This document shows positions 28,324-64,000 of a stretch of 64,000 bases of DNA, in pieces. The translations under genes were made by a program, and so were the position numbers. The stretch's first letter is position 1. Each line of letters opens with the position of its first letter. The DNA is from Sphaerodactylus townsendi (taxonomy: Eukaryota), in NCBI RefSeq assembly GCF_021028975.2, contig NC_059425.1:65224001-65288000 (forward strand), read 5' to 3'. The notes under the pieces are model-generated. The model did not search any database. It was not told the DNA's origin and was given only the letters and a program-made list of their open reading frames with translations.

Positions 28324-28563
28324 ATGCCCTTTCTGGAGTGGGTTGCGCGGCGGATCAAGAAACAACCACGGCCCTCACGCAGAAAGAGAATCATTCAAAA
28401 GTTAAGTAGTCTTCACCAACAGGACTACCAGACTTTGCTTGAGGAATGTTTGAAGAAAAATCGTCTCTTTGAGGATGAGAACTTCCCAGCTGATATCAAG
28501 TCCATTGGAACAGGGCCGCTCCTTCAAAAACTCCCGCAGAAACTGCAGTGGAAGAGGCCACAT
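28324..28563 (+). CDS. CAPN14: CAPN14 coding exon 1 (MPFLEW...LQWKRPH, 80 aa)
   Basis: accATG start; QQDYQTLLEECLKKNRLFEDENFP; donor CAT|gtaagt; likely acceptor ggcag| at 28206. Confidence 0.92.
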
Positions 28564-30206: not shown

Positions 30207-30276
30207 GAACTTCACAAGACTCCAGTATTTTTTGATGCAAACACAAAACACCTTGCTCTGTGTCAAGGATTGATAG
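30207..30276 (+). CDS. CAPN14: CAPN14 coding exon 2 (ELHKTPVFFDANTKHLALCQGLIG, 70 nt)
   Basis: Polypyrimidine tract, ttccag| acceptor, TAG|gtaagg donor; CQG oxyanion-hole Gln. Confidence 0.93.
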
Positions 30277-30859
30277 GTAAGGGATTCCCGCCCTGTGAGA
30301 TATATGCCATGTCTTAGCCTGGATCCTACCATATTTCTAGCTATTGAAAACTTCCTGCTCGAATGGCCTGGGAAAGTTTGCTTCTGCTAGTCACTGTTAT
30401 CTGTTGCAGCTGCAGGGGGATGGAATGAAACCCATTAGGTTCTCAACTGCTCTCCTTAGTTGTTATCACTGTCTGAGGAATGTGTGTATGTGTATGCATA
30501 TGACTGTATTCCCTCTTACCTCCTCCCTCTTCCCTCTAGGAATGTGTGTGGGTCTTCTCACCTTTGGATATATGTGTCTCTGCTAGGGGAATATAATCTT
30601 TTGCCTGTCGCCTTGTATTCAGTTCAAACAATATACTAGTCATCAACTTCCTATGCTTGTCATCAATACATGAGAATTCTGCTGCTAAAGTATTGATTCC
30701 TGTCACTGAGCAAGTCTAGGGTTATGACAGTATATGATATCAAACAACTGAAATATGTTATCTAAATGGTATTGCCAGCAACAAGGATCATTCTAAGTTT
30801 TAGGGCAAGTTGCCAGTCCTGCTGTCTTAGATGTCAGGGACTGAGCCTTGGACTTCTGC

Positions 30860-31053
30860 TAGGGTTGCTGATTCTAGGATCAGAAATTCCTGGAGATTTG
30901 GGTGTGCATCCTAGGGAGGAGAAGGTTCCGGGCATAGTCTAATGTTCACAATCCAAAGCAGCCATTTTCTCCAGGGGAACTCATCTGTGTAGTCTGGTAA
31001 TCAGTTGTAGTTCTGGGAAATATTCAGGCCCCACCTGGAAGTTGGCAACCTTA
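30860..31053. mobile_element. hAT MITE with TAGGGTTGC termini
   Basis: Exact 8-bp TSD ACTTCTGC. Confidence 0.88.
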
Positions 31054-31257
31054 ACTTCTGCATACAAATCTGTCTCACCAAGCAGCTGCCCATCAGGGCA
31101 TGGATAGATGAACCAACCAATAGCTTGGTTCCGTATCAGGCAGCTTCAGAAGTGTGAATCCTTTGTACAGAGATTCTGTTTGGATTCACGGCTAGTAGCT
31201 CTTGATATTCATGAATCTGGATATCATCAAAAAAAGCCCCTCTAACTTGGTAGCAAT

Positions 31258-34200
31258 TGTAACGAACTTGCCCCACCCTGAAGGGCTGGCGTACAGCAGG
31301 CCAAAGGGAGAAGGCCTTAGCAACAGCCAGAAAAAGAAAAAAAAGGCTCCACAAGGAGAGAACCGACCTGATTGGCTGAAAAAGGTCCAGTAACGTTTGG
31401 CAAGAGCTAGGGGGAGCCAGTGGGCTTACAGCACTGAGAGGAGAGTTGAGGGCTGATAGGAGTCGGTCAGAGAGAGCAGAGCAGAGTCTGGCAGAGAGGA
31501 GTTCCTGTCAGCTCTGGAAGAAAAGAGATTCTGTCTCAGCAGAGTTGGCTGACAGGAGTCCAGTCCCTGTGTACACGGTGTCTGCTGGACAGAGAGAGGA
31601 GGCCCTGAGTGGGTGCAGCTTGATGTGCCCTGCAGGAGCCTGGCGGTGTTAAAACTGCCCAGACCTTATCTAGTCTGCTCTTACTCCCGTGTGTGGAATC
31701 ACCAGAATCACCAGTCTGGGAGAAACCAGTCCAGAGGCAGTGAAGCCATTATTAGGACCTCGAGTGGGAGAGAGGGAGGCCACGTGTGCCAGAACCTCCT
31801 GGGCTTGGACTGTGTGCTTGGGTGTGAGAAGTGGGTATTGGAGCAGTGTGGAATAGTGTCTGTGTGCGTGAGGGAAGTTATTAGTTAAAAGGTAAATCTT
31901 CCGTTAAGAGACATCTGCGTGTGTCGGTGTGCATATGAATCTGGAAGTAACCCCATCTTAAGGACAAACTTATTCTAGAAACCAACAAGTAAGTTAAACC
32001 TCTCAAAGTTACCGGAGAAAGCCTCTGTTAAACCGCTAAATAAAAGTTTCTTTTCAGCTTTTGTTCACCTTTTAAAACCTTTCCAGTCATTAGTAATTTT
32101 TTGTCTGTGTGTCTGTGTTCCCATAGGGAAAGTGGTGTCTGGGGTGGAAAATCCAGTATTAGAGTGGGCTATAGAGGAAAAATATTATTGGTGGCAGCGT
32201 TTTTGAGAAAGCAGAACTCTATATATAGAAAGTGGCTTTCGTTACATTTTAGCTGACAGGCGGCGGGATCCGGCGGTAATATTCTAGATCCAGTTACTAA
32301 CAGCGCGGAGGAAAGCCCATTTCATTTTGTTTTATTTTGTTTTTCTGATTTGTGAGGTAAAACTGTGAAATTTTCTCCTCACAAATGGCACCACCTAAGA
32401 CACAAAAGACAGCTGGTGAGGGAAAAGCCCCAGAGACAGGTGATATTGAAACACCCAAAGAAAGATCCCTTTCAGTGATTGGGATGAGCATGGAAACTGA
32501 AGCTGGCCAGTATAGATGCTGGGATTGAGAAAGCTAAGATGGCTTCTGGAGTTGGTAAAAAGCAAAATTAGAGGCTAAGAGTGATGGCTGAAATGAAATG
32601 CTTGAAGGTAGAAATTGAAATAGTTAAGCTACGGGCTGAAAGTGGCCAGAAAAGGTGCTGAGAGAGTTTCAAAAATGGCTGGCGGAAATGGAGTGGAAGG
32701 GCAAACATGGAGCCGATAAAGGAAGGGACATGTTTGATTTGAAAGAGGTGTAGAGGGAAATGAAGCTCAGAGCAGAGCTGCCCATCCCCCACACTGTTGT
32801 GGAATTTCCCTCAGCGAAAGATGAGAAAATGGAAACAGTTTCCTAGGGTTGGCCAAAGTGTAATTCGGATGAACTGAGGGAAATCTTTTTCCCAAATGCT
32901 GATGGGGAAACCCTCAGAATGGCACCCAGTGAAGATGCAGTTGGAAAGTGACATAGCGCCAACCCTGCAAAGGTGATGCACTTACCAGCGTTAACGAAGT
33001 CCAGGAGAGCAGCAGAAAACTCCTTAGCAGCCTGGACTTTGTGGAACCAGAAGACTGGAGTCTGGGCAGCAGTTCCAGAAGAGTTGCAGATGGATAAAGG
33101 TGTTCATGCATGACTGGTGCCAAAGAAAGACCAGAGGCAGGATTGAGTTCCTGAAAAAGAACTGAAGGAGACAGCTGAGCTTGCTGAATCTCCCAAAGCT
33201 ACCAAAAGGTGGTTCCGAGTTCAGTGCCAGGCAGTTCCAGAGGTGGAGGCGAAGTCCAGTTGCCAGCAGCCCTCCCAGCGTGCCCAGCAACCGTGCAGCT
33301 GAGACGATGTTCCCTCTTGCGGAAGGCGGTACCGGAAGAAAGATGTTGAGATGGTCTCCTGTGAGAGGAAAGGAGGCGAGGAGGCGACTGCCGATGTCCA
33401 CCTAACCAACTGCTTGCACGAGGTTTCCAGTTCCGCAGAGGCGGATCCAGTATCCAACAAGAGCGGGACATTGTTGTGCAGGACTTGTGGCGAGGACCCA
33501 GTGCAGGTCATGGCAGGAAACACCTGCAAACATGAACTGAAAGTAGCAGTCAGCCGCCAGACCTCAACAGGAAGCGCCTTCTAGCGAGCCAACGCATGAG
33601 GGACTGTTGTGAAAGCCCAACATTGCAGCCTGCCCAGCAGAAGACCGAAGCTGAAGTTTGGCATACCAGACCTGCAAAAGAGGAAACTTGAGGGGACCGG
33701 GGGAGGTCAATCTGGTATAAAAAATAGAAAAGGGTCTGATATGTATTTTTTTTTTTTTGATGTAGGTAGCACTTCACAAAGTACTGAGTTTAAAAATATG
33801 CTTGTTGAAATGTAATGTGGATTACTGCAATGTTATTGATACTTATTAGGAATTCATGAGGTAAAGTTTAACATGAGTAAGAATGTTTATAAAGTAAAAT
33901 GAACTTTAAAAGGTAAAACTTAAATGCATTTGAAAATGTGAAATTTTTTTTGACAACTGTTTAGTTTTGGGATTAACGTGTGTAAAGCTTTATTTTACAC
34001 ACAGTTTGCTTTTGCAATGAGGGCTTGTAGCCCTGCGTAGTCCCAGTAATGTTTTAGGGAAAGGGGACATATGTAACGAACTTGTCCCACCCTGAAGGGC
34101 TACGAAGTACAGCAGGCCAAAGGGAGAAGGCCTTAGCAACAATGTTTCAGAAAAAAAAAAAAAAAAAAAAAAGGTCTCCACAAAGGGAGAGAAACCCGAG

Positions 34201-35091
34201 CCTGATTGGCTATTGAAAAAAGGTCCAGTAACGTTTGGCAAAGCAGCTAGAGAGGAGCCAGTGGGCTTACACAGCACTGAGTAGGAGAGTTGAGGGGCTG
34301 ATAGAGTCGTGGGTCAGAGAGCAGAGCAGAGTTCCTGGCAGAGAGGAGTCTGTCAGCTCTGGAAGAAAAGGATTCTGGTCTCTCAGCAGAGTTGGCCCTG
34401 ACTGAAGTCCAAGTCCCTGTCCTAAGCGGTGTATGCTTGGAGCAGAGAGAGAGAGGCCCCTGATCATGGGTGCAGATTGAAGTGCCCAGCTTCAAGGAGC
34501 CTGGCGGTTTTAAAACACTTGCCCAGAATTCTATCCCTAGTCTGCCTTGCCCTGTGTGAATCAAACCAGAATCACCAGTCTGGGAGAGAAGCTTTTGTCC
34601 CAAAGAGGCAGTGAAGCCATATTAGGACCTTGAGTGGGAGAGAGGGAGTTGCCAAAGTGTGCCAGAAATCTCCACATGGGCTTGGACTGTGTGCTTGGGT
34701 GTGATCAGTGGGTATTGGAGCAGTGAGGAATAGTGTCTGTGTGCGTAAGGGAATTTATTAGTTCAAAGCTAAATCTTCCCTTAAGAGACACCTGCGTGTG
34801 TCGGTGTGCATATGAATCTGAAGTAACATCTTAAGACAAACTTATTCTGAAACCAACAAGTGTTAAACCTCTCAAAGTTACCGGAGAAGCCTCTGTTAAA
34901 CCGCAAATAAAAGTTTTCAGTTTTGTTCACCTTTTAAAACCTTTCCAGTCATTAGTATTTTTGTCTGTGTGTCTGTGTTCCCCGCAAAGGGTGGTGTCTG
35001 GGGAAAATCAGTATTGAGTGGGCTATAGAGGAAAAATATTATTGGTGGCAGCGCAGAAAGCAGAACTTATATATAAGTTGCTTTCGTTACA
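31258..35091 (+). mobile_element. Non-autonomous LTR retrotransposon (Gypsy-like): LTRs 31258-32246 and 34072-35091, 1.8-kb internal region without pol
   Basis: Two LTRs of about 1 kb bounded by TGTAACGAA...TTCGTTACA; 5-bp TSD GCAAT; degenerate tRNA-Leu-like PBS (32250-32269); PPT AGGGAAAGGGGA (34056-34067); frameshifted gag-like coiled-coil region from ATG 32385. Confidence 0.92.
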
Positions 35092-35466
35092 GCAATCATC
35101 ACTTTCTTTAGAATCAGCTTTCTCCGCTATGGCCCGTTTGTTATTCTACAGAGTGATGATGGTTTTTTTAAGCCTCAAAGGCACCAAGCCAAATATTGAA
35201 ATATTGAAACTATCTGGACAGAAACTAGCTAAGCACAGTGAAGTTTGAAAATATACAGATATAGTAGATAATTGTATTGAAAGCTAATTTCAAAAAGCAT
35301 CATTTCATAAAAGATCTACTTTTCCATCTCATTTTAATTCCAATAAAGATATTGCAGAATAGATTTTAGATTCAACTTTCCCTAAATTATTTAATTCCAT
35401 GCTAGTGGTAATAATTCATAAATGTCTATATTGTCTTCTCTTTTGTCTATTTTTTTCTTGGTATAG

Positions 35467-35588
35467 GAGATTGCTGGTTTTTGGCTGCCTTGGAAGCTCT
35501 GACTTTTCATCAAGATATCTTGTCTCGGGTAGTGCAAGAGAACCAGAGCTTCGAGAGGAAGAAGTATGCTGGAATATTCCATTTCAAG
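35467..35588 (+). CDS. CAPN14: CAPN14 coding exon 3 with catalytic Cys (TGC 35472-35474): [23 protein letters not shown]...YAGIFHFK
   Basis: tatag| acceptor, AAG|gtgggc donor, 122 nt, phase 1 to 0. Confidence 0.95.
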
Positions 35589-35933
35589 GTGGGCAACAGT
35601 CCCCTAAAAATGGCCTAATCCATAGGTCCCCAATCTTTTTGAGCCTGTGGGAACTTTTGAGTGTGAAACAATGTGGTGAGCGCAATTACTGGAAATTGTT
35701 GAGCTCATTCAAGGTACTTGTGGTTGCTTTTTAATTCCTGTCTTTCTTGGAGCAACCCTTCTGCACCTGCTCTCCTTGTCTGAGGTCTCCCAAATCATTT
35801 CTATCCTCAGACCTCTGCTCCCCACCATCTGATGCTCACTGTCCCTGCCTGGGGTCTCCTGACCCCTGTCAATTCTTCCCTCCAGCCTCCATCTGCTTCC
35901 CACTGTCCTGCACTCACTCTCCCTACCCAACAG

Positions 35934-36927
35934 CAAGGACGTAGGTAAGGGGGGGTTCTCGGGTTCAACCCCCCCATTACATGTCTGAAACTCCGCCCCC
36001 CCGTTTGTGTGTTTTTTGTATTTTTAAGTGTTTTTTTATTTTTGGCCGGCAGGGGGTGAAGTTTTTAAGTTAGCAGCACCAACATTTCAGGGATTTGCTG
36101 GGAGGCTCTCCTAATGATACCACCCAGGTTTGGTGAGGTTTGGTTCAGGGGGTCCAAAGTTATGGACTTCCAAAAGGGGTGCCCCCATCCCCCATTGTTT
36201 CAAATGGAAGCTAATAAGAGATGGGGCTACACATTTGAGGGTCCATAACTTTGGCCCCCTGAACCAAACTTATCCAAACCTGGGTGGTATCATTAGGAGA
36301 GTCTCCTAAAGATACCCTGAAGGTTTGATGCTGCTAGCTTTACAATTGCATCCCTGACAGCAGGCACACCCCAAATTCCCCCAGATTCTCTTTTTAAATC
36401 CACCCCCTTCGGCATGGATTTAAACGGAGAATCTGAGGACCCCAGTTTAAATATTGAAAGTGATGCTGCTTAAGGGTGGGGGATAATCCACCCCCAAACA
36501 GCATCACTTTCAATGTTGTTTTAACTGGGGGCCCCAGATTTGCCCTTTAAAGTGAATTTAAAAGGAGAATCTGGACTCCCTAGTTGAAACACCATTGAAA
36601 GTGATGCTGTTTGGGGGTGGATTCCAGCATCACAGCAGCCGCCCATGGGGGGGGGGAGGGGCGCAATACTCAGATTTTGCACCGGGCTCCATTTTCCCTA
36701 GTTGCACCTCTGCCCGGAGGAAGGGACTGCCGGCTGGGAGCCCAGCCGGTGGGGGGGCAGGGCGGGCGGGGCAGGGGAATCTGCCATCCCTGGCCTCTGA
36801 GAGCTGCTTTTATAAGTACTGAGGCTGGGGTGGGGTTTGGGGAGGCGTGGCCATGCCCCCCAGGGCTGGGTGGAGCATGGCCATGCCCCTGAACACCCCC
36901 ATTAAAAAATCTATACCTACGTCCCTG
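35934..36927. mobile_element. Composite non-autonomous hAT element
   Basis: TIRs CAAGGACGTAGGTA / TACCTACGTCCCTG; exact 8-bp TSD CCCAACAG. Confidence 0.9.
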
Positions 36928-37074
36928 CCCAACAGTCTTGTCTATGCAGTAGATTGGTACAGCTCTTTCCCAGGGCAGATGTGGTGCCTGGATGCGGAGC
37001 TGCCCATTGCTGGCCAGGGCACTGGCCAGGGCACCCAGGTTGGCATCTTGTGTTGGAGACTCCTGGCCTTATCA

Positions 37075-37300
37075 GAAGAAGAAAAAGAATTTGGATCTAT
37101 TCACCATTTTTCTCAACTGTAAGGAGTCTCAAAGTGGCTTACAAACTCCTCTCCTTACCACAGACACCTTGTAAGGTAGGAGGGGCTGAGAGAATTCTGA
37201 GAGAACTGTGACTAGCCCAAGGTCACCAAGCAGGCTTCATGTGTAGGAAACAAATCTGGTTCACCAGAGTTCACTGCTCTTAATTACTACACCACTTTGC
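37075..37300 (-). mobile_element. Squam3-like SINE
   Basis: (AGA)n tail followed by the family body. Confidence 0.8.
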
Positions 37301-37429
37301 TTCCTGTATCACTATATCCAATAGTAAAGTGCCGGTTAGGGATATCTTCTTAGGAAACATCCTGGTGTGCATAAAAATATTGCTTCATAAATTAAGCAAA
37401 AGAATTGTCTGTTAAATGCCATCAATAAC

Positions 37430-37790
37430 CATAACACTCTCCTTAACACCACATTTCAAAGTAGTCCATTCTATTCCTGTCAGCTTTCTTCATTGTCCAA
37501 CTTTACACCCATAGTAATAGGAAATCCTATGGCATGAATTAACTTGGTTGCTAGTGACACGTTCTTACACTTAAAAATATTTAATAGCTTCTTCATGGCT
37601 GCCCTTCCTTGTCTCAATCTCCTTCTGATTTCTTAGTTGCAATCTTCTTTTTGGTTGGTGATGAAGCCAAAACAATTGGAACCATTTCAGTTTCCTCAGT
37701 GTCCATCCTAAAGATTAGTAATTCTCCACTAGTCATTAATTTTGTCTTCTTGATGTTCAGCTGCCATCCTGTTTTGACACTTTCTCCAAT
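37430..37790 (-). mobile_element. RTE/Bov-B-like LINE RT fragment
   Basis: The minus strand gives LNIKKTKLM..., EIRRRLRLGR.AM-like and FE.WC.RR.L-like RTE motifs. Confidence 0.7.
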
Positions 37791-37791
37791 G

Positions 37792-38093
37792 TAGAAGAAG
37801 AAGAAGGATAAAAGTTGGATTTATATCCCCCTCTTTCTCTCCTGTAGGAGACTCAAAGGGGCTTACAACTCCTTTCCTTTCCCCCTTCACAACAAACACC
37901 CTGTAAGGTAGGTGGGGCTGAGAGACCTCTGAAGAACTGTGACTAGCCTAAGGTCACCCAGCTGGTGTGTGTGGGAGTGCACAGGCTAATCTGAATTCCC
38001 CAGATAGGCCTCCACAGCTGAGGTAGCAGAGCGGGGAATCAAACCCGGTTCCTACAGCTTAGAGTACACCTGCTCTTAACCACTATGCCACTG
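37792..38093 (-). mobile_element. Squam3-like SINE (full length)
   Basis: Head gcatagtggttaagagcagg and box B gggtttgattcccc on the minus strand; (CTT)n tail. Confidence 0.85.
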
Positions 38094-38165
38094 CTACTCA
38101 TATACACCTCCTCTTAGAAACATCCATGTGCTCACCCACTGGAGAAGATTAATATGTTCTTTTTG

Positions 38166-38349
38166 GGGTGCTGTGTGGTTTCCAGGCTGTATGGCCGTGT
38201 TCTAGCAGCATTCTCTCCTGACGTTTCACCAGCATCTGTGGCTGGCATCTTCAGAGGATCTGATAGTAGGAAAGGAAAGCAAGTGGAGTATATATACCTG
38301 TGAGTAAAGGTCAATAGGTGAGGGCATCTGAATAGGAGTGGCCTGGCAA
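38166..38349 (-). mobile_element. Penelope terminal fragment inserted in the polypyrimidine tract of coding exon 4
   Basis: 12-bp TSD ATGTTCTTTTTG (38154-38165 and 38350-38361). Confidence 0.88.
38216..38258 (-). ncRNA. Minimal type I hammerhead ribozyme motif (PLE-type)
   Basis: UCCU-CUGAAGA-U-GCCAGC(cacagau)GCUGGU-GAAAC-GUC-AGGA. Confidence 0.7.
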
Positions 38350-38369
38350 ATGTTCTTTTTGTTTTCCAG

Positions 38370-38506
38370 TTCTGGCATTTTGGCAAATGGGTTGATGTGG
38401 TAATAGATGATCGACTGCCAGTAAATGAAGCAGGTCAACTTGTTTTTCTCTCATCTGTTTGTAAGAACCTGTTCTTGGGAGCTCTTCTGGAAAAGGCTTA
38501 TGCCAA
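38370..38506 (+). CDS. CAPN14: CAPN14 coding exon 4 ([17 protein letters not shown]...ALLEKAYAK)
   Basis: ttccag| acceptor, AA|gtaagt donor, 137 nt. Confidence 0.95.
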
Positions 38507-38668
38507 GTAAGTGAACAGAAACATTAAGGAATTATTAATTACAGTACATGTTACTATATGTAACATAGGACACATGACCATTCCAAATCTTTGGAGTTTT
38601 TCCTTGGTTCTAGATTGCAATTAGTTGACCAAATAAATGAAAAATGCTTGTACTAATGTTCTTTACAG

Positions 38669-38843
38669 GCTATGTGGTTCCTATGAAGATTTACAGATTG
38701 GCCAAGTGTCAGAAGCTCTGGTAGACTTTACAGGTGGAGTTAACATCACAATAAAACTGACCGAAGCACCACCTGACCTCTGGGATATACTGACAAGATC
38801 AACTTACAGCAGATCATTGATATGCTGCCAGACCCATTTAGGG
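38669..38843 (+). CDS. CAPN14: CAPN14 coding exon 5 (LCGSYEDLQIGQVSEALVDFTGG...CQTHLG)
   Basis: Branch-point-like TACTAAT at 38651, tacag| acceptor, GGG|gtaaga donor, 175 nt. Confidence 0.95.
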
Positions 38844-39671
38844 GTAAGAATTATTATCTTTTTAATAATCACATTTATGTCTCATCTTTCCTTCAAAGAG
38901 TTTCTGGAGATTATCCCATTTTATCCTAATGATTCTCTGTAAATTAGCTGAGAGATAGCAACTGGTCCAAGATCACCAGTGAGTGTAAGAGTGGACCAGT
39001 GATTTGAACATGTCTTCTCCAAACCCAAATTAACACTTAGACTATTAAATCAAATTGATTCCTGATAAGTTACTGTTACATCAATTTCAGGTTGGGTTCT
39101 TGCCTAGAAAAATTTCCTTCCTAATGTGAATTGCAAAATGATAATTTAGCTCTCCTTCCCCTATCCCTCAGTTAATTTCTATTTGTGTGTAGGCAATATA
39201 TAGCTCTCAACACAGTTGCCAGATTTTGGCAAAGGAAACTCAAGACATCTGTGGGGTAATAAATCATTACAAGTAATAAATTCACCTCCTGCTGTGTGGC
39301 TGCTGTAATCATACACACCCAAGACTGTGAAATTAAGGTCTGTTAATTGTGTAAGTATGCTGGTAGGGTGGAGTTAATGGTGAACATCTCCCCAAGGTGG
39401 TATTTATAAGCAGATCAAAGTCCTTTGCTCTGGGATTTGGTAGATGTCATCCTCAGAGGGAGAGTTTCCACTTAGTGCATATATCATGGTAATGCTTGAA
39501 AAAGTATCCAGTCTTATCAACTCCACACACCCTACCTAAACTATGGGGCAATTTGCTTTCAGACTGGGCCAAGTAAATGCCACAATGAAGAAGGAGAAGG
39601 TTTGTACCATATGTTTCTTCTGAACTGGTCTATGACTGTAAAATAAATAAACTAAATAAAACATATGTTTC

Positions 39672-41270: not shown

Positions 41271-41472
41271 NNNNNNNNNNNNNNNNNNNNNNNNNNNNNN
41301 NNNNNNNNNNNNNNNNNNNNNNNNNNNNNNNNNNNNNNNNNNNNNNNNNNNNNNNNNNNNNNNNNNNNNNNNNNNNNNNNNNNNNNNNNNNNNNNNNNNN
41401 NNNNNNNNNNNNNNNNNNNNNNNNNNNNNNNNNNNNNNNNNNNNNNNNNNNNNNNNNNNNNNNNNNNNNNNN
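41271..41472. other. Assembly gap (202 N)
   Basis: Read directly from the sequence. Confidence 1.
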
Positions 41473-41843: not shown

Positions 41844-41909
41844 AAAACAAGAGTTCTCGAGAATGGACTGGTAGCAAGCCATGCCTATACAATGACTGGC
41901 ATACGAAAA
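41844..41909 (+). CDS. CAPN14: CAPN14 coding exon 6 with catalytic His (CAT 41880-41882): KTRVLENGLVASHAYTMTGIRK
   Basis: tacag| acceptor, AAA|gtgagt donor, 66 nt. Confidence 0.94.
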
Positions 41910-42356
41910 GTGAGTCCACATCTTTTTTGGGTAGTTCCATATGGGTTTAAAAAAAATTTGGCCAGTGTCTACACTCTTATGTTTCATTTGATTATGGCAT
42001 TTTGATATGACCATAAAATGGTACCTTCCCTGGACCCAGAAGTGTTTGGATCTTGTAGCATTTCTTTCCATATCTTTTTGTTCCAAAAGACCTATCTTGC
42101 CAACTTCTTTTAGCTCTTACCCCATAGTGATAACTGTCCCAACCAGCTGTCCCTTGTTTCTCTTAATGAATAACCTTCTTATCTTTGTGCATCTCAGTTG
42201 TCCTTGGGGATCAGTGACACCTCACACTTGTCCCCATGTCATCTGGATTTTCTTCACTCCCCTCCCCACTTGTTATCTCTTGTTGCTTTGGTCTTTCTTG
42301 GCTCGCCATAGCCTCTCTCACTCTATTTTTCCTGTGCACCATGCTGTTTCTGACTA

Positions 42357-46427: not shown

Positions 46428-46566
46428 ATATTTAGGACTAAGCTGCTAAAAAAAAATTGTAGGCAAAACTCGACAGCTTGAATTGCTGCCAGGTTATTAT
46501 AAGCAGCTGGTACAGCTGGGCATTGAACAGTGGCCTTGTAAAAGCAATGCATTTTTGTTTTGACAG

Positions 46567-46652
46567 GTGACTTGCAAACATGGACCAGAGTATTTAGTAA
46601 GACTAAGGAATCCTTGGGGGAAGGTTGAATGGAAAGGCGATTGGAGTGACAG
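46567..46652 (+). CDS. CAPN14: CAPN14 coding exon 7 with catalytic Asn (AAT 46609-46611): [28 protein letters not shown]
   Basis: gacag| acceptor, AG|gtgagt donor, 86 nt. Confidence 0.95.
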
Positions 46653-47016
46653 GTGAGTGTTTATAGCAGGGTCTCCAGTGGAATGCTCATGCAATGTGGT
46701 TGGCTCACTGGCTTCTGCAGAGTAGCTTGAATAGCTCCCTGAGGATCCAAGAAAAGATCCTGAAAAGGTCTACTCTAGGTTTTTTAAAAATGTTTTTATT
46801 TCATACTATTTTTCTCTGAGCTGCTTATCCGGTCTGGTGTTCTTCCAAGTACATGTTCTTATTCTGGGAGAGAACCAAAAATTGTAACATGCAATGGGTG
46901 GGGAATACCTTTGGATATTTTTGATAATTCAGAAGTAGTTCTCATTAAAGAAAAGTTTGACAGGTGAGCCCTGGATTATGGCAGTAAAAGAGCAAATATT
47001 TGACAGGCAGAAATCA

Positions 47017-48725: not shown

Positions 48726-48869
48726 GCCTAGGGGCATGGCTTATAGATTTAACTACAGAGCTACTATTCACTCCTCTCTCATAATTTGAGCACTGCAGAA
48801 AAGTTGTCTATAATACAATAATGCTTAATAAGCAATGTTTTTTTAAAAATATTTTTCTGGTCTCATTAG

Positions 48870-48944
48870 GTCTGGGAAATGGGAACTGCTCAGCCCCAAA
48901 GAGAAGATTTTGCTGCACAGAAACGGTGATGATGGAGAGTTCTG
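48870..48944 (+). CDS. CAPN14: CAPN14 coding exon 8 (SGKWELLSPKEKILLHRNGDDGEFW)
   Basis: attag| acceptor, weak TG|gtactt donor, 75 nt. Confidence 0.93.
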
Positions 48945-50331
48945 GTACTTTTAAAGAAATACTATATCACTGCTTTTGTTACTTCTGCCACTTCTGCCAC
49001 TTTAGAACAGAATTCTATAAGAACAGAATTCCTATAAACCTCCTAAAATTAAGAAAGTGTGAAAAACCTTCCCCATACTTTTCTTAGGCCAAATATGCTC
49101 GCATGATATTCATTTGGATGGAAGACAGTAGTATTGAAATCAATGGGATTTTCTTTCCTACAATGTATTTAGAAGAGGCGTAAAGACAAAATGATTGGCT
49201 TAGAAGAAATTCACTTATATCCATGTCCTGTGGCAATAGGATTATAAGAAAATGAATAACCCAGTACAGATGGATTGTCCCAGTGGAAGGAAAGATTAGT
49301 TGGATATGAGAATCAGTTTGCTCTTCCTCTGTGGGCCAGAGAAGAAATACAATGAGGAGGAGTTAGGGAGGAGTTCATATTTCTGCTAATGCTTCCATGC
49401 TTCCCTGCAAGACCCTGTCTTTCTTTAAAATTTTTGAAAGTATGTCACTTTCAGATTAATCATTATATTTTATGTTCTTTTCTATACTACTTTGTAAACC
49501 ACCTTGAGAAAGCTATGTGAAGCGGCATCAGAGAAATCATCTTAAACAAAACATGTTGTATAGCTTTGGTGGCACTGTACCATCTCAGCTCAAACTTGTA
49601 AGAAACCAATCAGATCTCAAAGTCATTGTGGAAGCAGTTTTTCAGAGCATCCGCACAATGTTGTATCACCTGCTCTTGATCCCATTCCATTGTCTTTCAT
49701 GGTTTTTCCTCTTTTGCTCCAATTTTTCCAGAATCAACTTGGATCTCATGCTGATATTTCTGCAAATATCAGAGTGAAAGCAAGTTAGCCCACATGTCGA
49801 CAAGAAGGTGTAGATTTCTGAACTTCTTTACTCACAGCTGGTGCTTTTGCCCACCCCATTCTCTTGCACTGACTTCTCCCCAACTTATGCACACTACTAG
49901 CAGGCTTTTAAAGACAATTGGTAGGTGGTATAGCAAAATGCACTGTAGAGTTATATCTACCACCAGGGTTTTTTTTAAGTTGGGGAAAAGGTCTACAGCA
50001 GTGCAGGAACAGTGCAAAAGCAGGTGTGAGAGAATAACGCGGGAAAACCTGATACCCATTCCTTATGCCTCTGCATTTGTAGTGGTTGTGAGCCCACATT
50101 GGGGAATTTTCTGCTGTTTGAAGCAGCCAGGGGGGGAGAGAAAATAAAATACCTGAGTGCTTCTTCCCTGAACTCGTTTCTGGTTCCCTGGTGTCTTTCA
50201 ACTGAAAAAAACAAACATGGGAGATTTGATCACATATCTCTCAGTTTCATTTTGAGATCCGCTCACATTGATTTCCCCCTGAACATCTATGAAAGAACAG
50301 GATTTATTCAACTTCTGATGCCATACAATTG

Positions 50332-51337: not shown

Positions 51338-51501
51338 GATGACTCTGCAAGATTTTAAAACCCATTTTGCTAATCTGATCATCTGTAAATTAACTCCTGA
51401 CCTGCTGAGCCAGGAAGATGGGAAAAAGTGGATGTCCTCCCTGCAGTTCGGCAGATGGGTCAAAGGAGTCACAGCAGGGGGCAGGTTGAGGTCTCACAAA
51501 A
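51338..51501 (+). CDS. CAPN14: CAPN14 coding exon 9 (MTLQDFKTHF...GVTAGGRLRSHK)
   Basis: catag| acceptor, A|gtaaga donor, 164 nt; end of CysPc and start of the CBSW domain. Confidence 0.94.
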
Positions 51502-51930: not shown

Positions 51931-52476
51931 GTCAGAGGTGAGAGGTGGCCTGCCACAGTGACATCCTGGCTGCCCAGTTTCCCAGGCTCCCTTATTCCAC
52001 AAGAGCAGCATTTGATGGAAACCAGTGGGCTGCAGTGGGAAGGGGAGGAAGGAAAGTTCTATTCTACTGCGGGAAAGTTTAGCCTGGATCCAACACATTG
52101 TTTGCAAACTCTTGAATGTTAGGACAGATCACACTAGTGGACTTTCTTCACTAAATGCCATAGTTCTTGGAAAGGTCTCATATAAATTAATGGGTACATA
52201 ATGATTTTCTTCTGTAACCCTATGCAGATTTTAGTGCCTCTGAATAGTTTGCTAATGGGTTATTTCTTCTTTGTTTGAATCATGATTTAGCACATTAATA
52301 TTACGGATCCGTGAAGTCACAGATATGATTTTAGTAGGATGTGCTGCTTGATAATATATCTGCCCATGATTTTTTTTCTTTGGCACCACAACTCAAACGT
52401 TGCTAAGACTTTCTACAATGTATTAAATCATGCTGTGGAGGTACATGGCTCATCTGTTTGTGGTCTTGCTTCCCAG

Positions 52477-52640
52477 ATACATTTTGGATGAACCCCCAAT
52501 ACCAGCTGAAAGTCCTGCAAGGAAACGGGAGCAAGAGATCCTTGTACTCTTGCAGTGTGCTGGTTTCTCTGATCCAAAAACACAACAGCAAACACCGGAA
52601 TCAGATGCCTCATTTTCACATAGGCTTTTATGTCTATAAG
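52477..52640 (+). CDS. CAPN14: CAPN14 coding exon 10 (TFWMNPQY...HIGFYVYK)
   Basis: cccag| acceptor, AAG|gtaggc donor, 164 nt. Confidence 0.94.
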
Positions 52641-52660
52641 GTAGGCCTAATTTTTTGTGT

Positions 52661-52758
52661 GTGCAGAAATTATTGGGATGAGTTGTTCTAAGCAATCTGT
52701 GAAAAGGCCACTGGCTTTACAGATTGCTTAGGACAACTCACCCCAATCATTTCAGCAC
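52661..52758. repeat. 98-nt inverted repeat (43-bp stem, 12-nt loop)
   Basis: Pairing by hand gives 38 Watson-Crick pairs, 2 G-U pairs and 3 mismatches. Confidence 0.9.
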
Positions 52759-57281: not shown

Positions 57282-57691
57282 TAGTGGTGTTGAACTCATT
57301 TGTTACAAAGGCCAAATATAACATAAATGNNNNNNNNNNNNNNNNNNNNNNNNNNNNNNNNNNNNNNNNNNNNNNNNNNNNNNNNNNNNNNNNNNNNNNN
57401 NNNNNNNNNNNNNNNNNNNNNNNNNNNNNNNNNNNNNNNNNNNNNNNNNNNNNNNNNNNNNNNNNNNNNNNNNNNNNNNNNNNNNNNAGGGGGGTGGGCT
57501 CCCAGCAGGGGGGTGGGAGTGGGGGGCTATCTCAGCTTGAGATGGTTTATCAGGTCTGCAAACCAGCTAAAATAACATCTCTCTCACTCCAAATTAGGGG
57601 CGGGGAAGGGTTGCCGCATCTGACTCAAGGGCCTGATAAGCCCTCTCAAGGGGCTGAGTCTGGCCCCTGGGCTGCATGTTTGATACACCTG
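57282..57691. mobile_element. hAT (Charlie-like) element spanning a gap
   Basis: Termini tagtggtgttgaactc / gtttgatacacctg; near-TSD ATTTAGAT / ATTTAAAC. Confidence 0.6.
57330..57487. other. Assembly gap (158 N)
   Basis: Read directly from the sequence. Confidence 1.
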
Positions 57692-59273: not shown

Positions 59274-59511
59274 ATACGTACCATTAGGATGGCTTGGCAA
59301 CTCCCGCCTCCCCCAGACTTCACTGCCCAATTGTGAAGGCCATGCTGTGGCAGCAGAGTTTGGGTGTGTGTGTGTGTGTGCAATTTCAGTGCTTGCCCCC
59401 AGTGCCGTTTTCTGTAGCAATGCCCCTGTCTAGTTCATTCTTCATAACATGACTGTTGTCTGGGACATCTAATGCAGTCAGAGTATGTGTTTTTCTGTTT
59501 TCTGTTGCCAG

Positions 59512-59717
59512 TACTGTGGGAGCAATAAAAGACTACCTCCTGAATTCTTTGTCCAGAACCTGCCTTTGAATAGCTCTCCAGTCTTTGTGAATGACCATGA
59601 GGTGACTCAGGATTTCCGGCTGCCGCCTGGAGTCTATGTCATTGTACCTGCCACCTCAGAACCTCACCAAGAGTCAGAGTTCCTCTTGCGCATCTTCTCC
59701 AGGAAACATAATCTTCG
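59512..59717 (+). CDS. CAPN14: CAPN14 coding exon 12 (YCGSNKRLPPEFF...PGVYVIVP...EFLLRIFSRKHNLR)
   Basis: gccag| acceptor, CG|gtaggt donor, 206 nt. Confidence 0.94.
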
Positions 59718-60065
59718 GTAGGTGCCACTCATTGTTTCGCTACAGCCATCCTGATGTATCTAACAGTGCAAGGATTTGTTCTTATTGTGGGGAGAGGCCC
59801 TGGTTCATTGGTAAAGCACATATTCTGATTCTGTGAGCAGAAGGTGCCTAGTTCAACTCTGTTAAAAGGTTCTCAGGCAGCTTGAGACAGTGCGGAGGTG
59901 CTGCTGATTGGAGTGGACTACTCTAAATTGTAGCCACCACTGCTACAGTATGGCTGTGTTTGTGAACAGAGCATAATCTAGGTAAGCCACTGTATTTAAG
60001 ACATGATGTTGTATAAGCTGGCTAAAAGACCCTCTAATTTTCTTTTTTGTTCTTTTTGCATTTAG

Positions 60066-60102
60066 TGAAATTGGTGGAAATTCAAGTCCAGTACTTTCAA
60101 AG
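60066..60102 (+). CDS. CAPN14: CAPN14 coding exon 13 (EIGGNSSPVLSK)
   Basis: tttag| acceptor, AAG|gtgaga donor, 37 nt; human equivalent recalled as EIGSNSGVVFSK. Confidence 0.9.
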
Positions 60103-61440
60103 GTGAGATGAGAAACAAGCCATTTGACTTTCCTTTCACTTTATATCACTGGCTCTTCTGCTATTTCTCTTTCTATCTGTAACTTAGTACTGTTCTGCTT
60201 GGTCCAGTTTCCTGTGCAAGGTGCCAGATTTCTTAAGGCGACCTGCCAATGAAATCAGCATAAGAAAAAAAATCTCAAATGCTTCACAGATGAAGAGTTG
60301 GGCACCAATCTCTGTGCAGCCCACTTAAGGTGGAGATGAGCAGCATGTATATCCTCACTGTGAGACTTATGGGAACATGTACCCCTTCCTTCATCTAGAT
60401 GTGTATCACATTCACATTATAAGCAGTGCCAATTCAATCCATGGTGTTTCCTGAGGCCAGCTGTCGTCTCCTCCACCACTTTTTTCTGGAAGCCAGAGCA
60501 GCTAACAGTGGGGAGAAAGGACTCTTGGAAGCAACATGAGTGTACACCGATGTGGGTGCTCACTCTGCCGGCACAAGGAGCAAATGCACTAGCGGAGGGG
60601 CTAATATGCCAGCAGTGGGACACAGTGCGACTGTGTGGTGCCTGAACTTGGAAGCTGCCATGTGCCCCAACGCTCCACTGCAGGAGGCTTTGCTAGTGCA
60701 GGTGGGGGCAGTCTTGGGACATTCCCAGGGATGGAGCCAACTTTAGTCAGCTTCCACAGAGCTTTCAGCTCGGTAATACCCCCCACACCCCTCAGGAACT
60801 TGCGCCACATTTTAATGTGGCATAGCCCATTAGATGGCAATAGGGGTTTTCAGACTGATGGGAAAGTTTGTCAGTTTTTATATTCCCCGTGGTGCCTGTA
60901 ACACCTTAGGAGGTGGTAGGGCTGCACTGGAGCAGTGTCGTCTCCTGTCATCACAGAACCGTCGTCCTCCTATGAATTGCACTGCAAAACTCCCTGCTCT
61001 GCTTCTTTCCCACAGTCTGTTTAAAAATAGTGGGCCAAGCAGTGCAGTTGGGCATCTCAAACACTCATGAAAATCCCTTATAGCATGGTGTAGTGGTTAA
61101 GAGCAATGGACTTCTTGTGTGGCCTAGAAGAAAGATCCAGTGAAAGTCATGCATCAGTCTGCCCGTAATATAAAACAGCATGTTGTTTGACTGGAAAAGA
61201 AGGCAAGGATTATTAGTTGCTTTGGTTCCCAGGCAGAGGCATCTGGGGCAAGGTGGTGGTGAAGGAAGTGGTACCATGAGAGGCTGGGGACAGGCAGGTG
61301 AGGCATCGTCTACCACCACCTCAGCTCTGCCACTTGAGACAACCACCTGAGCTGATAGTGCTGGTTCTGTTTTTGAACATTAGAAAAATTAAAAACCCTG
61401 CTTTTTTTCTGAAGCCCATTTTTTTTGTTATACTTTTCAG

Positions 61441-61503
61441 GAAATTGTTGACAAATATGATGACAAAATTTGGGATGATTACTTCACGAAGTACTTTGAA
61501 CAA
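61441..61503 (+). CDS. CAPN14: CAPN14 coding exon 14 (EIVDKYDDKIWDDYFTKYFEQ)
   Basis: ttcag| acceptor, CAA|gtaagc donor, 63 nt. Confidence 0.9.
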
Positions 61504-62371
61504 GTAAGCATTTGTACTTTGTCAGCTGAAGAAAATGAACTGGCATCATTATAACTGTTCTATTTTAGTTGATTTGTGTAGATTTGTAGATTAAAAGAAA
61601 GGTTTCATATTTGGGAAGATAACGGCTCCTAGAGAAGATTACTTGAGGCCAATGCCAGTGAGAGAATCTTCCTGAGGTTATCAAGGAAAATTCATGTCTC
61701 AACCATCTATGCTAATTAAAATCCAGTATGCTACGCCTCCAACATGCCCCTTCAATTGTTCCTGGTCTACATATTCAACAGAATGATGTGGTACAGCCCT
61801 TCAAAATGCAGATGGGAGAATCAGTTGTTGGACTGCATTTGTTCATTATTCCATTCTGAAGTGGTGTAGCCAAAGGGGATTTATCATATGTTTCTTCTGC
61901 AAGTGTGACCTGTTTGTTAGAAAACAATAGACACTTGTGCTATGGGTTCACTATGTTTTTGGTACTCATTTATCAGGTTGTGGCCACTGGTTAGATGAAA
62001 GACCTACTGAACTTGCTTGCACCAGTTTTCCCATATTATACAGTTTCAGTGCAGTGTTTCTTGAAAATGTTATCTTGGATCTGCAGATACTTATTTCCAA
62101 TATATCAAATCATTGCCTAATAGCTGATAGCAGGAAGGGGGATAATAAAGAGACATAACAGGGTTCACATGCAGGATGTGATTTAGATGCTAAGCTTATG
62201 TGTGAGCATTTTTCCCTGCTGACAGGCAGTGCTTCCGCATGATGAAAAAGCTCTAGCTTTGGATGATGGATATTATAGAGCTTGGGCACGTGATATTTTT
62301 GCTTGATTGTTGACTCTAAGCAAAGATGGTGCTTAGCATTTAAGTCTTGCCTTTTGTCTCTTCCGCTCCAG

Positions 62372-62426
62372 CATCCTGAAATAAACGTTGTCCAGCTCCA
62401 ACGGCTCTTGAACATGGCCTGGACAA
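62372..62426 (+). CDS. CAPN14: CAPN14 coding exon 15, start of PEF domain (HPEINVVQLQRLLNMAWT)
   Basis: tccag| acceptor, A|gtaagt donor, 55 nt. Confidence 0.92.
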
Positions 62427-63804
62427 GTAAGTACAAGCTAGTTTGCTAAAACCCCTCTTTCTGTGGATTCACAAGTGAAATGTAGCAACGTTAATTTTCA
62501 ACTCAGCCTTATATGGATACCCAAAAGATGATTATGTTTCTCCTGTGACGCTGCTGATGTTGTAATACGGACTCCTGTGGCATATATTGAAATGCTAATA
62601 TTTTCACATCGTTAGGGTCAAACAAATATGATACTGCTGGGATACCTGTGAATTAATTTTCTGGATGTTTGAAGGGGGAATAGCAGCTGCCCAAGGCTGG
62701 GATGGGGAATGGGAGTACAATTAATTGGGAGAGACAGTAGCCTTTTCTCATCCTTTGCACATTTTCAGTTATTTCAGTTCCCTCCCACCACTGACTTATA
62801 CATTTATTTATAAAATTTATAAATTTCTATACATTTATAACAATTTAAGAAATGAAATGACATGTATTGTTCATGGACTTTGCAGAGTAGGGCTTCCCTC
62901 TCCTACCGAGTGCCCTGACATTTTGTTCCTGGGTGTCACTGGAAGGGAGAAATTGTCAGAAATTGCTACCCCAACTCTGGTTTTATTGCACAAAGCATTA
63001 TGGGAGCATTCTCTCCATTCTATTGTGGCTCTAATCTGACCTGGAGCCCCCCATTCATTATCAAATATGGAGGAACAGGCCTGCTTTGACCTGCAGGCTC
63101 TATTCTCTCAGGGGCTGCCAACTTCTTTTGTCACCACCTGTCCTTTGTAGGAATTTTCCACTGGGGAGGGTTAGGGCCCCCCAGCTTCCTTTCTAACTCT
63201 GAGGCCTAGCCTCTGTGTTCTCGCTTCCCCTCTCCTGGGTACCTCAGGGATGATTCACAACCTGGTGCGCCCCTGGAGGAATAGCTGCTTGCCAACGGCC
63301 AGTCTTTCTCCAGGCGCCCTTATTTTTCAATAGTGTGTCCAAGATGGCAGAGGTCTATGTTGTACAGAGAACAGCTACCAGCATCCAACATTTAAAAGTA
63401 TTTATTTTAAAAATGTTTAAAAGCATACTTTTAGCACAGCACCAGATGAAGCAAGAGATTCAAAAGAAATAAAGGATAAACGCAATTCCTCTATCCATTC
63501 CTCTATACATATCCTATCAGTTATTAAAACAGGACAGGCTCTTAAGCTTAGGATAAATGTTCCCTCTAATTTCCCCCCACCACTAAGCGAACTTCCCCAC
63601 CACTGACTGGAACTTTTGATGGTTTGAGCAAAAATATTTTCAATTCAAAGCTACTGTGTGGCATTCAACCTTTATCCTATCCAGCACATATATACAATTT
63701 TAAAAGCACTTTTCTATTGAGTCACTAGTGCATGACATGCACCTGGGTTAGATATATAAATAATTGAGCTTTTAAGGGACATCTCTCCATTTGAAGGGAG
63801 GAAA

Positions 63805-63972: not shown

Positions 63973-64000
63973 AATGAGATTTCCTCCTGAGCATATATGC

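Follow-up and report, generated by a model that had tools for sequence, protein, structure and literature searches.

Calpain-14 (CAPN14) of mammals is an IL-13-induced oesophageal calpain that is linked to eosinophilic oesophagitis and is a drug target candidate in this disease. Its activation by Ca2+ is usually assumed to resemble that of calpains 1 and 2. The CAPN14 locus of the gecko Sphaerodactylus townsendi raises a question in this respect, as four codons at or near the first Ca2+ site (PC1, site 1) of its protease core depart from calpain-1. A preliminary description took these codons for one cluster of changes that suggested altered or absent PC1 Ca2+ switching, or an early pseudo-enzyme. 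The window analyzed here, a stretch of 64,000 nucleotides, was used to determine whether the four states belong to this lizard or to the family. The locus is probably a single, functional CAPN14 in which PC1 is vestigial family-wide, and in which R104H and W187L are tolerated or mildly compensatory. Gene identity, residue states, phylogenetic spread, exon 4 reads, and dN/dS form the observed part of this explanation.

Identity and structure of the gene

Searches of the window took one exon at a time, and full-length analyses used P0269, the RefSeq protein recorded as 'calpain-14-like [Sphaerodactylus townsendi]', which the exons match exactly (100% identity). The locus is the CAPN14 gene of S. 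townsendi. Its top database matches are all named calpain-14 or CAN14, and its closest relatives by identity are gecko CAPN14 proteins (88-89%). The CAPN14 proteins of Euleptes europaea (P0261), Eublepharis macularius (P0260), and Gekko japonicus (P0270) are orthologues with 79-89% identity, and the Eublepharis and Gekko genomic loci are collinear with the S. townsendi gene in exon structure. The CAPN14 gene tree agrees with the species tree and places the gene within the gecko clade (SH-aLRT 100), nested in squamates (98). The terminal branch of S. townsendi has a length of 0.079, against a median of 0.11.

Fourteen coding exons, all open, were found in the window (Table 1), instead of the 15 first counted. 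The gene continues past the window end, and residue 564 of 700 is the last one inside. Exon 2 is translated as ELHKTPVFFDANTKHLALCQGLI. Exons 3, 4, 5, and 7 singly pass the Pfam cut-off for Peptidase_C2 (37.8-51.5 bits vs 23.8) and fall in collinear order on positions 57-253 of the profile; exon 1, at 20.4 bits and thus below the cut-off, corresponds to positions 1-32. The core is followed by a Calpain_III (C2-like) domain, for which exons 10 and 11 match PF01067 with 51 and 63 bits, and the Peptidase_C2 and Calpain_III matches are collinear along the exons. In the RefSeq protein P0269, PF13499 and PF21875 are present and an alignment to the PEF domains of PDB calpains was obtained; the exons for this part are located past position 64000, outside the window. 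The whole protein matches PDB calpains with an E value of 3e-165, and the CysPc fold is shared by sequence with the calpain-1 and calpain-2 cores (mini-calpains; PDB 1KXR, 2ARY, and 1MDW; E 1e-84 to 1e-86). The RefSeq model extends exon 10 to about 52682, past the canonical donor, and its exon 11 acceptor lies 12 nt further in than the ancestral acceptor.

CAPN14 in mammals adjoins CAPN13, GALNT14, and EHD3. No neighboring gene was identified in the window, where eight of the nine ORFs of at least 130 aa (five of them upstream of CAPN14) were scanned and had no Pfam match; the ninth ORF spans an N run. N runs are located at 41271-41472 and 57330-57487.

Table 1. Coding exons of S. townsendi CAPN14 in the window and the four codons near site 1.
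Feature	Coordinates	Strand	Basis
Exon 1, residues 1-80, start codon 28324	28324..28563	+	tblastn of P0269, 100% identical
Exon 2, 70 nt, PC1 Ca2+ loop equivalent and Gln109 (CAA 30264)	30207..30276	+	direct reading of splice sites (AG acceptor, GT donor)
CAC, His at calpain-1 R104	30249..30251	+	assembly and RefSeq protein derived from it
GCT, Ala at calpain-1 D106	30255..30257	+	
Exon 3, catalytic Cys115 (TGC 35472-35474)	35467..35588	+	X2 contig over 35400-35957, 0 differences
Exon 4, 137 nt	38370..38506	+	X2 contig over 38323-38900, 0 differences
CTG, Leu at calpain-1 E185	38469..38471	+	
TTG, Leu at calpain-1 W187	38475..38477	+	also in second sample
Exon 5	38669..38843	+	Peptidase_C2 match
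Exon 6, boundaries approximate, catalytic His272 (CAT 41880-41882)	41844..41915	+	
Exon 7, boundaries approximate; Asn296 (AAT 46609), Trp298 (46615), PC2 ligands E302 (46627) and D309 (46648)	46564..46653	+	
Exon 8, PC2 ligands D331 (48931) and E333 (48937)	48868..48945	+	
Exon 9, 3' boundary approximate	51339..51490	+	
Exon 10, Calpain_III domain	52476..52640	+	canonical donor AAG/GTAGGC at 52640/52641
Exon 11, Calpain_III domain	59510..59718	+	ancestral acceptor at 59509/59510
Exon 12, short, boundaries approximate	60067..60102	+	
Exon 13, boundaries approximate	61438..61503	+	
Exon 14, last inside the window	62369..62428	+	

Calcium ligands and catalytic residues

Direct reading of the window confirmed the four codons. 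Positions 185 and 187 were numbered by aligning NLFLGA of exon 4 to NEFWSA using the 7x79 chain coordinates. Exon 2 alone (23 aa) had no calpain match in PDB, as the query is too short. Therefore, positions 104 and 106 were numbered from the alignment of the full protein, in which KHLALCQG aligns to TRTDICQG without gaps.

Site 1 of calpain consists of V99 O, G101 O, D106, and E185, and site 2 consists of E302, D309, M329, D331, and E333 (PMC4057710, table 3). In S. townsendi CAPN14, the acidic site-1 ligands D106 and E185 of calpain-1 are absent and are replaced by Ala and Leu, while Asp and Asn stand in place of V99 and G101. The PC2 ligands E302, D309, D331, and E333 are all shared with calpain-1 and calpain-2, together with Cys115/His272/Asn296, Gln109, and Trp298. 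All of these residues were read in the window exons, and the catalytic triad, oxyanion Gln, and PC2 ligands are intact as first described. R104 is reportedly the partner of E333 in the calpain core (Moldoveanu et al. 2002). The Arg of this coupling pair is missing from S. townsendi CAPN14, in which position 104 is His and E333 is present. Judged from these residues, we infer a lack of Ca2+ binding at site 1 and an activation that would be driven by PC2. The search of the open literature found no discussion of the CAPN14 Ca2+ ligands or of the role of W187, and no Ca2+-binding measurement for any CAPN14 core.

Residue states across CAPN14 and other calpains

The states of the four positions were surveyed in 183 CAPN14 cluster representatives, including 107 birds, 50 mammals, and 20 squamates (four geckos and 16 others). 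Position 185 is L, V, I, M, or Q, and Glu was found in 0 of the 183. All 50 mammalian representatives have Leu, Val, or Met at this position; therefore, mammals already lack the Glu ligand of site 1. A frog 'calpain-14-like' protein has Leu185 already and keeps R104 and D106. At position 106, Ala is present in 4/4 geckos and in 12/16 of the remaining squamates; of all 20 squamates, 19 have Ala, Val, or Met, and only Podarcis has Asp. Asp is found at this position in 103/107 birds and 42/50 mammals. D106 is also repeatedly gone outside squamates, with Gly or Cys in monotremes and marsupials, losses in some birds, and sporadic His or Tyr. Placental mammals mostly have Asp106 and Arg104, unlike S. 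townsendi. Position 104 is Gln in 105 of 107 birds and Arg in most mammals (48/50) and squamates (17/20).

At position 187, Trp is present in 182 of the 183 representatives, and Leu is unique to S. townsendi. Furthermore, Trp or Phe occupies this position in all 155 motif instances from 150 diverse calpain representatives. W187 is thus nearly invariant, and a change to Leu cannot readily be taken as neutral. Across the 183 representatives, no variation was seen at the catalytic residues and hardly any at the PC2 ligands, where the exceptions are some gaps or incomplete rows and one turtle with His at D309. Mammalian CAPN14 belongs to the same family and has the same domain order, with Trp187 and the PC2 ligands conserved. 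Unlike in CAPN14, the combination R-D-E-W is retained in 25 of 31 representatives of diverse calpains.

The CAPN14 proteins of the other geckos share Ala106, Leu185, Asp99, GDCW, an intact triad, and intact PC2 with S. townsendi, but keep Arg104 and Trp187 where S. townsendi has His and Leu. At the codon level, Gekko and Eublepharis have CGC (104) and TGG (187) against CAC and TTG in S. townsendi. The His, Ala, and Leu187 codons had been described as one base away from the conserved codons, which holds; however, GCT (Ala106) is common to all three geckos. Among the four changes, only R104H (CGC>CAC) and W187L (TGG>TTG) are lineage-specific. These results leave standing the part of the original claim that concerns the absence of an acidic side-chain ligand at site 1 and of the coupling Arg, but they do not support a recent, lineage-specific cluster that points to an early pseudo-enzyme, as Glu185 is absent throughout the family, D106A is squamate-wide, and nearly every bird has Gln at position 104. 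Of the four residues, two are general across sauropsid CAPN14; position 104, with His only in S. townsendi, is not conserved in sauropsids, and W187L is unique. A recent clustered loss of PC1 was rejected in view of the family-wide state at 185 and the squamate-wide state at 106.

Read support and selection on the S. townsendi branch

All sampled words are present in the runs of two organism A samples. A 1367-nt contig from the second sample (X2) spans exons 4 and 5 with 0 differences, which excludes an assembly error in exon 4. This check of the assembly covered exons 3-5 and upholds TTG. TTG (Leu187) is probably also common to the related organisms B and D; this is only probable because one difference in each contig is unlisted. 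Two forms were seen in run X5 (organism C).

Pooled per-codon maps yielded 23 nonsynonymous and 44 synonymous changes for the S. townsendi branch, giving a dN/dS (omega) of 0.14, and 0.11 in CysPc. The corresponding branch omega is 0.26 in Gekko and 0.13 in Eublepharis. The value near 1 that would mark simple decay was not found, and the S. townsendi branch departs from neutrality with P = 6e-15. The differences in exons 3-5 between the window and related organism D are all synonymous (6/6, P = 9e-5). CAPN14 has therefore evolved under purifying selection in this lineage. Omega and the synonymous exon differences, taken together, do not support decay or the early pseudo-enzyme that had been suggested. 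Three of the 23 branch-specific replacements, Y98F, R104H, and W187L, fall within about 14 residues around site 1. This clustering is marginal (P about 0.03 for three replacements and 0.13 for two), and the residue set was chosen post hoc.

Proposed explanation and alternatives

The probable course of events is as follows. Site 1 would have been vestigial in CAPN14 since the family arose in early tetrapods, when Glu185 was gone. D106 would then have been free to drift, and the coupling Arg104 would likewise not have been held, as the Gln of birds suggests. CAPN14 cores would be switched on via the conserved PC2 (E302, D309, D331, and E333) with the C2-like and PEF domains, and the shape of PC1 may be kept by hydrophobic packing in place of Ca2+. 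The Sphaerodactylus lineage would then have fixed two one-base changes beside the dead site, namely W187L and the CpG transition R104H. Both changes are probably tolerated or mildly compensatory, in an enzyme that is still under strong purifying selection overall.

An adaptive functional shift is an unlikely alternative. According to this explanation, Sphaerodactylus remodeled the PC1 side of the PC1-PC2 interface by Y98F, R104H, and W187L after the squamate loss of site 1. A His-Glu pair of pH-dependent strength could possibly have replaced the Arg104-Glu333 salt bridge and shifted the Ca2+ or pH threshold of activation. W187L alters a position at which all other sampled calpains have an aromatic residue, and it is one of three branch-specific changes close to site 1. 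Leu187 is apparently fixed in at least three related organisms, whose later divergence is synonymous only, so it appears to be kept under constraint and not to be a step to decay. However, the clustering of the changes is weak by the post hoc values given above, position 104 varies freely in other CAPN14 proteins (Gln, Ser, Met, Lys, and His), CGC>CAC is a mutational hot-spot change, and the low branch omega shows no sign of positive selection. A bolder form, which is somewhat less likely again, makes CAPN14 a natural 'single-site' calpain core that lost the site-1 Glu when the family arose and the Asp in squamates; with R104H and W187L adaptive, the gecko enzyme would combine a PC1 independent of Ca2+ with a His-Glu interdomain latch, and its activation would be pH-sensitive.

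Incipient loss of function, with the site-1 changes as the first damage in an early pseudo-enzyme or decaying gene, is highly improbable. The change at the invariant Trp is radical, very high-copy repeats reach up to about 30 nt from the exon 4 acceptor, the exon 10/11 junction of the RefSeq model is odd, and no RNA run is among the listed runs that contain the stretch. In contrast, none of the 14 exons in the window has an interrupted frame, the triad, oxyanion Gln, Trp298, and the ligands of PC2 have all been kept, and the branch omega is low. The six exon differences, all synonymous, separate the window from a related organism that apparently also has Leu187. In addition, there is no damage to the exon 4 acceptor (polypyrimidine tract and CAG) or to the canonical splice sites of exons 10/11. 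The model for a pseudo-enzyme is CAPN6, a natural case among the calpains with a classical-type scaffold and an altered function. S. townsendi CAPN14 differs from it by its intact triad, as the catalytic Cys is missing from CAPN6 in placental mammals. Gene decay was rejected in view of the omega of 0.14 and the intact exons.

Assembly or consensus errors in one or both lineage-specific codons have hardly any probability: the His104 codon in exon 2 is backed solely by this assembly and the RefSeq protein derived from it, but TTG is backed by the contig from a different sample, the contigs of two related organisms have no listed difference here, and Ala106 and Leu185 also occur in other species. 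For exon 4, an assembly error is ruled out by the X2 contig.

Significance

With CAPN14 as a probably functional enzyme and a vestigial PC1 as its family-wide state, the chief value of these results is corrective. What seemed to be a Ca2+ switch lost through clustered changes in a single lizard is for the most part how calpain-14 normally looks in all tetrapods. Calpain biochemists may care about a CAPN14 family that is without the site-1 Glu, in which the Asp has been repeatedly lost and site 2 is nearly invariant. W187L and R104H in the gecko are a small natural experiment and not evidence of a dying gene. If these last two changes are adaptive, S. townsendi CAPN14 would be a ready-made natural mutant for dissecting the coupling between the halves of the calpain core.

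Gene identity and exon structure

Exon 4, used as the only query, retrieved both fragments and full-length sequences of CAPN14, and searches seeded with these proteins found 'calpain-14-like [Sphaerodactylus townsendi]' (P0269, the RefSeq protein, 700 aa). Every window exon is 100% identical to P0269, which establishes that the window is S. townsendi genome. The preliminary description had counted fifteen exons; 14 coding exons were found in the window, covering residues 1-564, and the PEF-domain exons lie beyond the window end. Gene-level work was carried out exon by exon and with the database protein P0269. Pfam matches to Peptidase_C2 and Calpain_III, with the exons taken singly, are in collinear order. 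A quick protein tree of 25 taxa places the gene in the gecko clade (support 100), inside the squamates (support 98). Its topology agrees with the species tree, and the S. townsendi terminal branch measures 0.079 against a median of 0.11. The gene is the annotated CAPN14 orthologue, a known member of the family.

P0269 carries a 10-residue insert (GLIFCVCRNYW; window 52640-52682 and 59509-59522), because the model runs beyond the canonical exon-10 donor (AAG/GTAGGC) as far as a weak one and enters exon 11 through an acceptor that lies 12 nt within it. The ancestral exon-10 donor and exon-11 acceptor are intact and in frame, and their junction would encode YVYK/YCGSNKR, collinear with YVFK/YHGDNKR of Eublepharis. 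The exon 10/11 junction as annotated may represent a minor isoform or an incorrect one.

Residues of the two calcium sites

In calpain-1 numbering, which is used throughout, site 1 (the Ca2+ site of PC1) consists of V99, G101, D106, and E185, and site 2 (that of PC2) of E302, D309, M329, D331, and E333 (PMC4057710). Positions 185 and 187 were numbered by aligning NLFLGA of exon 4 to NEFWSA of calpain-1, -2, -3, -8, and -9 in full-length human calpain-1 chain coordinates, and positions 104 and 106 by the gap-free alignment of KHLALCQG to TRTDICQG in the full-length protein. Direct reading of exons 2 and 4 gave the same four codons as the preliminary description. Its statement that the triad, oxyanion Gln, and PC2 ligands are intact also holds, as the protein has Gln109, Cys115, His272, Asn296, Trp298, and every one of the four acidic residues of site 2. 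R104 reportedly forms a salt bridge with E333.

Compared with the genomic loci of Gekko and Eublepharis, the codon at position 104 changed from CGC to CAC, a CpG transition, and that at position 187 from TGG to TTG. The GCT and CTG codons are common to all three geckos compared. At position 99 (codon 30234-30236), Asp is found in four of four geckos and Ser or Ala in other squamates. Calpain-1 has Val here, with a Ca2+-binding carbonyl, whereas the geckos have an acidic residue one place from calpain-1 D100.

Features of CAPN14 in the window and residue states across 183 CAPN14 representatives
Feature	Window position	In S. townsendi	Across CAPN14
Exon 2	30207-30276	AG acceptor, GT donor; translation ELHKTPVFFDANTKHLALCQGLI	
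Exon 4	38370-38506	45-residue translation	
Position 101 (backbone ligand; Gly in calpain-1)			Asn or Lys
Position 104	30249	CAC (His)	Gln in 105/107 birds and 2/3 turtles; Ser in Rhineura and Anolis sagrei; Met or Lys in two mammals; His in one bird and S. townsendi
Position 106	30255	GCT (Ala)	Ala in 4/4 geckos and 12/16 other squamates; Val or Met in iguanians; Asp among squamates only in Podarcis
Position 185	38469	CTG (Leu)	Glu in 0/183; Leu in reptiles and mammals; Val in birds; rarely Ile, Met, or Gln
Position 187	38475	TTG (Leu)	Trp in 182/183; sole exception S. townsendi
N run	41271-41472	intron of the gene	
N run	57330-57487	intron of the gene	

Read support and related organisms

Three runs of organism A, drawn from two samples, contain all 46 sampled words of 38370-38843. 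Four runs, all as Logan contigs, were aligned to 35400-38900; exon 2 lies 8 kb away, outside this span. In X2, the second sample of organism A, a 1367-nt contig covers 38323-38900 with 0 differences, which confirms that the exon-4 codons are real. Another X2 contig covers exon 3, also with 0 differences.

The contig of X4 (organism B) has 3 differences over the same span, none of those listed falling within exon 4. The contig of X6 (organism D) has 10, of which two are listed within exon 4 (38432 and 38495), both synonymous third positions. From these listed differences, Leu187 appears to be common to at least two related organisms, with one difference in each contig having no listed position. 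X5 (organism C) yielded two forms of exons 4-5 over 38409-38876. One, present at low depth, matches the window exactly; the second differs from it by 6-9% and has the ancestral Ala234 and Gly242. The two forms could represent a mixture, a hybrid, or a second copy.

In intron 3 (window about 35870-38440), contigs of four runs have word depths of 1e5 to 1e7 and many internal joints. This stretch is a very high-copy repeat that reaches to about 30 nt from the exon-4 acceptor. The polypyrimidine tract and CAG acceptor of exon 4 look intact.

Distribution of the substitutions in CAPN14

The CAPN14 alignment comprised 183 cluster representatives: 107 birds, 50 therian mammals, 2 monotreme entries, 20 squamates, 3 turtles, and 1 crocodile. 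Leu185 is already present in a frog 'calpain-14-like' protein (Eleutherodactylus coqui), which keeps R104 and D106. Asp106 is retained by 103 of the 107 birds, the turtles, the crocodile, and placental mammals. Gly replaces it in platypus, five marsupials, and a peccary, Cys in Monodelphis, Tyr in the sheep cluster, and His in three bird clusters; these losses outside squamates are independent. Asp106 of Podarcis, nested inside the Ala clade, is likely a reversal.

Among diverse calpains, position 187 is Trp in 149, Phe in 6, and Leu in 0 of 155 motif instances (150 representatives), and of the 31 representatives covering both motifs, 25 keep the canonical R-D-E-W. Judged from these alignments, the E185 change is as old as CAPN14 and D106A as old as squamates, with recurrence elsewhere, and R104H lies at a position without conservation in CAPN14. 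Among the 183 representatives and the wider calpains, W187L is the only truly unusual one of the four changes. The preliminary picture of a four-change cluster in PC1 therefore stands in part: site-1 ligands are lost and the triad and PC2 are kept, but the cluster is not recent, since position 185 is Glu in none of the CAPN14 representatives and D106A is squamate-wide.

Positions 113-114 also vary. Two residues ahead of the catalytic Cys, Glu stands in place of Gly in birds, turtles, the crocodile, and most non-gecko squamates; at the next position, birds, turtles, and snakes have Asn for Asp (ENCW vs GDCW). GDCW is retained by geckos and mammals.

Selection on the gene

Codon maps were built for S. 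townsendi, Gekko japonicus, and Eublepharis macularius, each species' protein being placed on its own locus. dN/dS was computed from pooled counts over 483 shared codons, with exons not joined and branch changes assigned by parsimony. Pairwise omega among the three geckos is 0.14-0.18. Changes on the S. townsendi branch number 44 synonymous and 23 nonsynonymous (omega 0.14; CysPc, the protease core, 0.11, PC1 0.14, PC2 0.08). Omega is 0.26 on the Gekko branch and 0.13 on the Eublepharis/root branch, and the S. townsendi ratio differs significantly from neither (Fisher P 0.11 and 1.0, respectively).

This omega of 0.14, which departs from neutrality at P = 6e-15, speaks against simple decay of the gene. 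The suggestion that CAPN14 is an early pseudo-enzyme is not supported, given the intact triad and the low omega. The window and organism D differ at six sites in exons 3-5, all six synonymous (P = 9e-5 under neutrality), which indicates that constraint continued past the origin of W187L, if organism D carries Leu187 as it appears to. The 23 branch replacements are for the most part conservative. Three of them (Y98F, R104H, and W187L) lie near site 1, a marginal enrichment for a set defined after the fact (P 0.03; 0.13 for two).

Implications for calcium activation

No acidic side-chain ligand is present at the PC1 site of the S. townsendi protein, nor in 19 of 20 squamate CAPN14 representatives (Podarcis keeps Asp106). 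The site-1 Glu ligand is absent from all CAPN14, and the site-2 ligands and catalytic machinery are nearly invariant. Measured against the two-site switch of mini-calpain, S. townsendi CAPN14 departs at site 1 and R104, as does the family at large. These observations suggest that CAPN14 cores would not use the cooperative two-site Ca2+ switch of calpain-1 and calpain-2. Activation would depend instead on site 2, in concert with the C2-like and PEF domains. The Ca2+-carboxylate cluster would be replaced by the hydrophobic residues Leu185 and Ala106. With the switch lost, positions 99-106 would be free to vary, which could account for Gln104 in birds and His104 in S. townsendi.

Only W187L falls outside what this relaxed-constraint account predicts. 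A second change such as Y98F may compensate for it, or W187L may be mildly functional. No discussion of CAPN14 Ca2+ ligands was found in the open literature that was searched, and the family-wide point may have been published before. Overall, S. townsendi CAPN14 appears to be an ordinary, constrained gene, in which site 1 would be vestigial as in the whole family, with two lineage-specific substitutions added.
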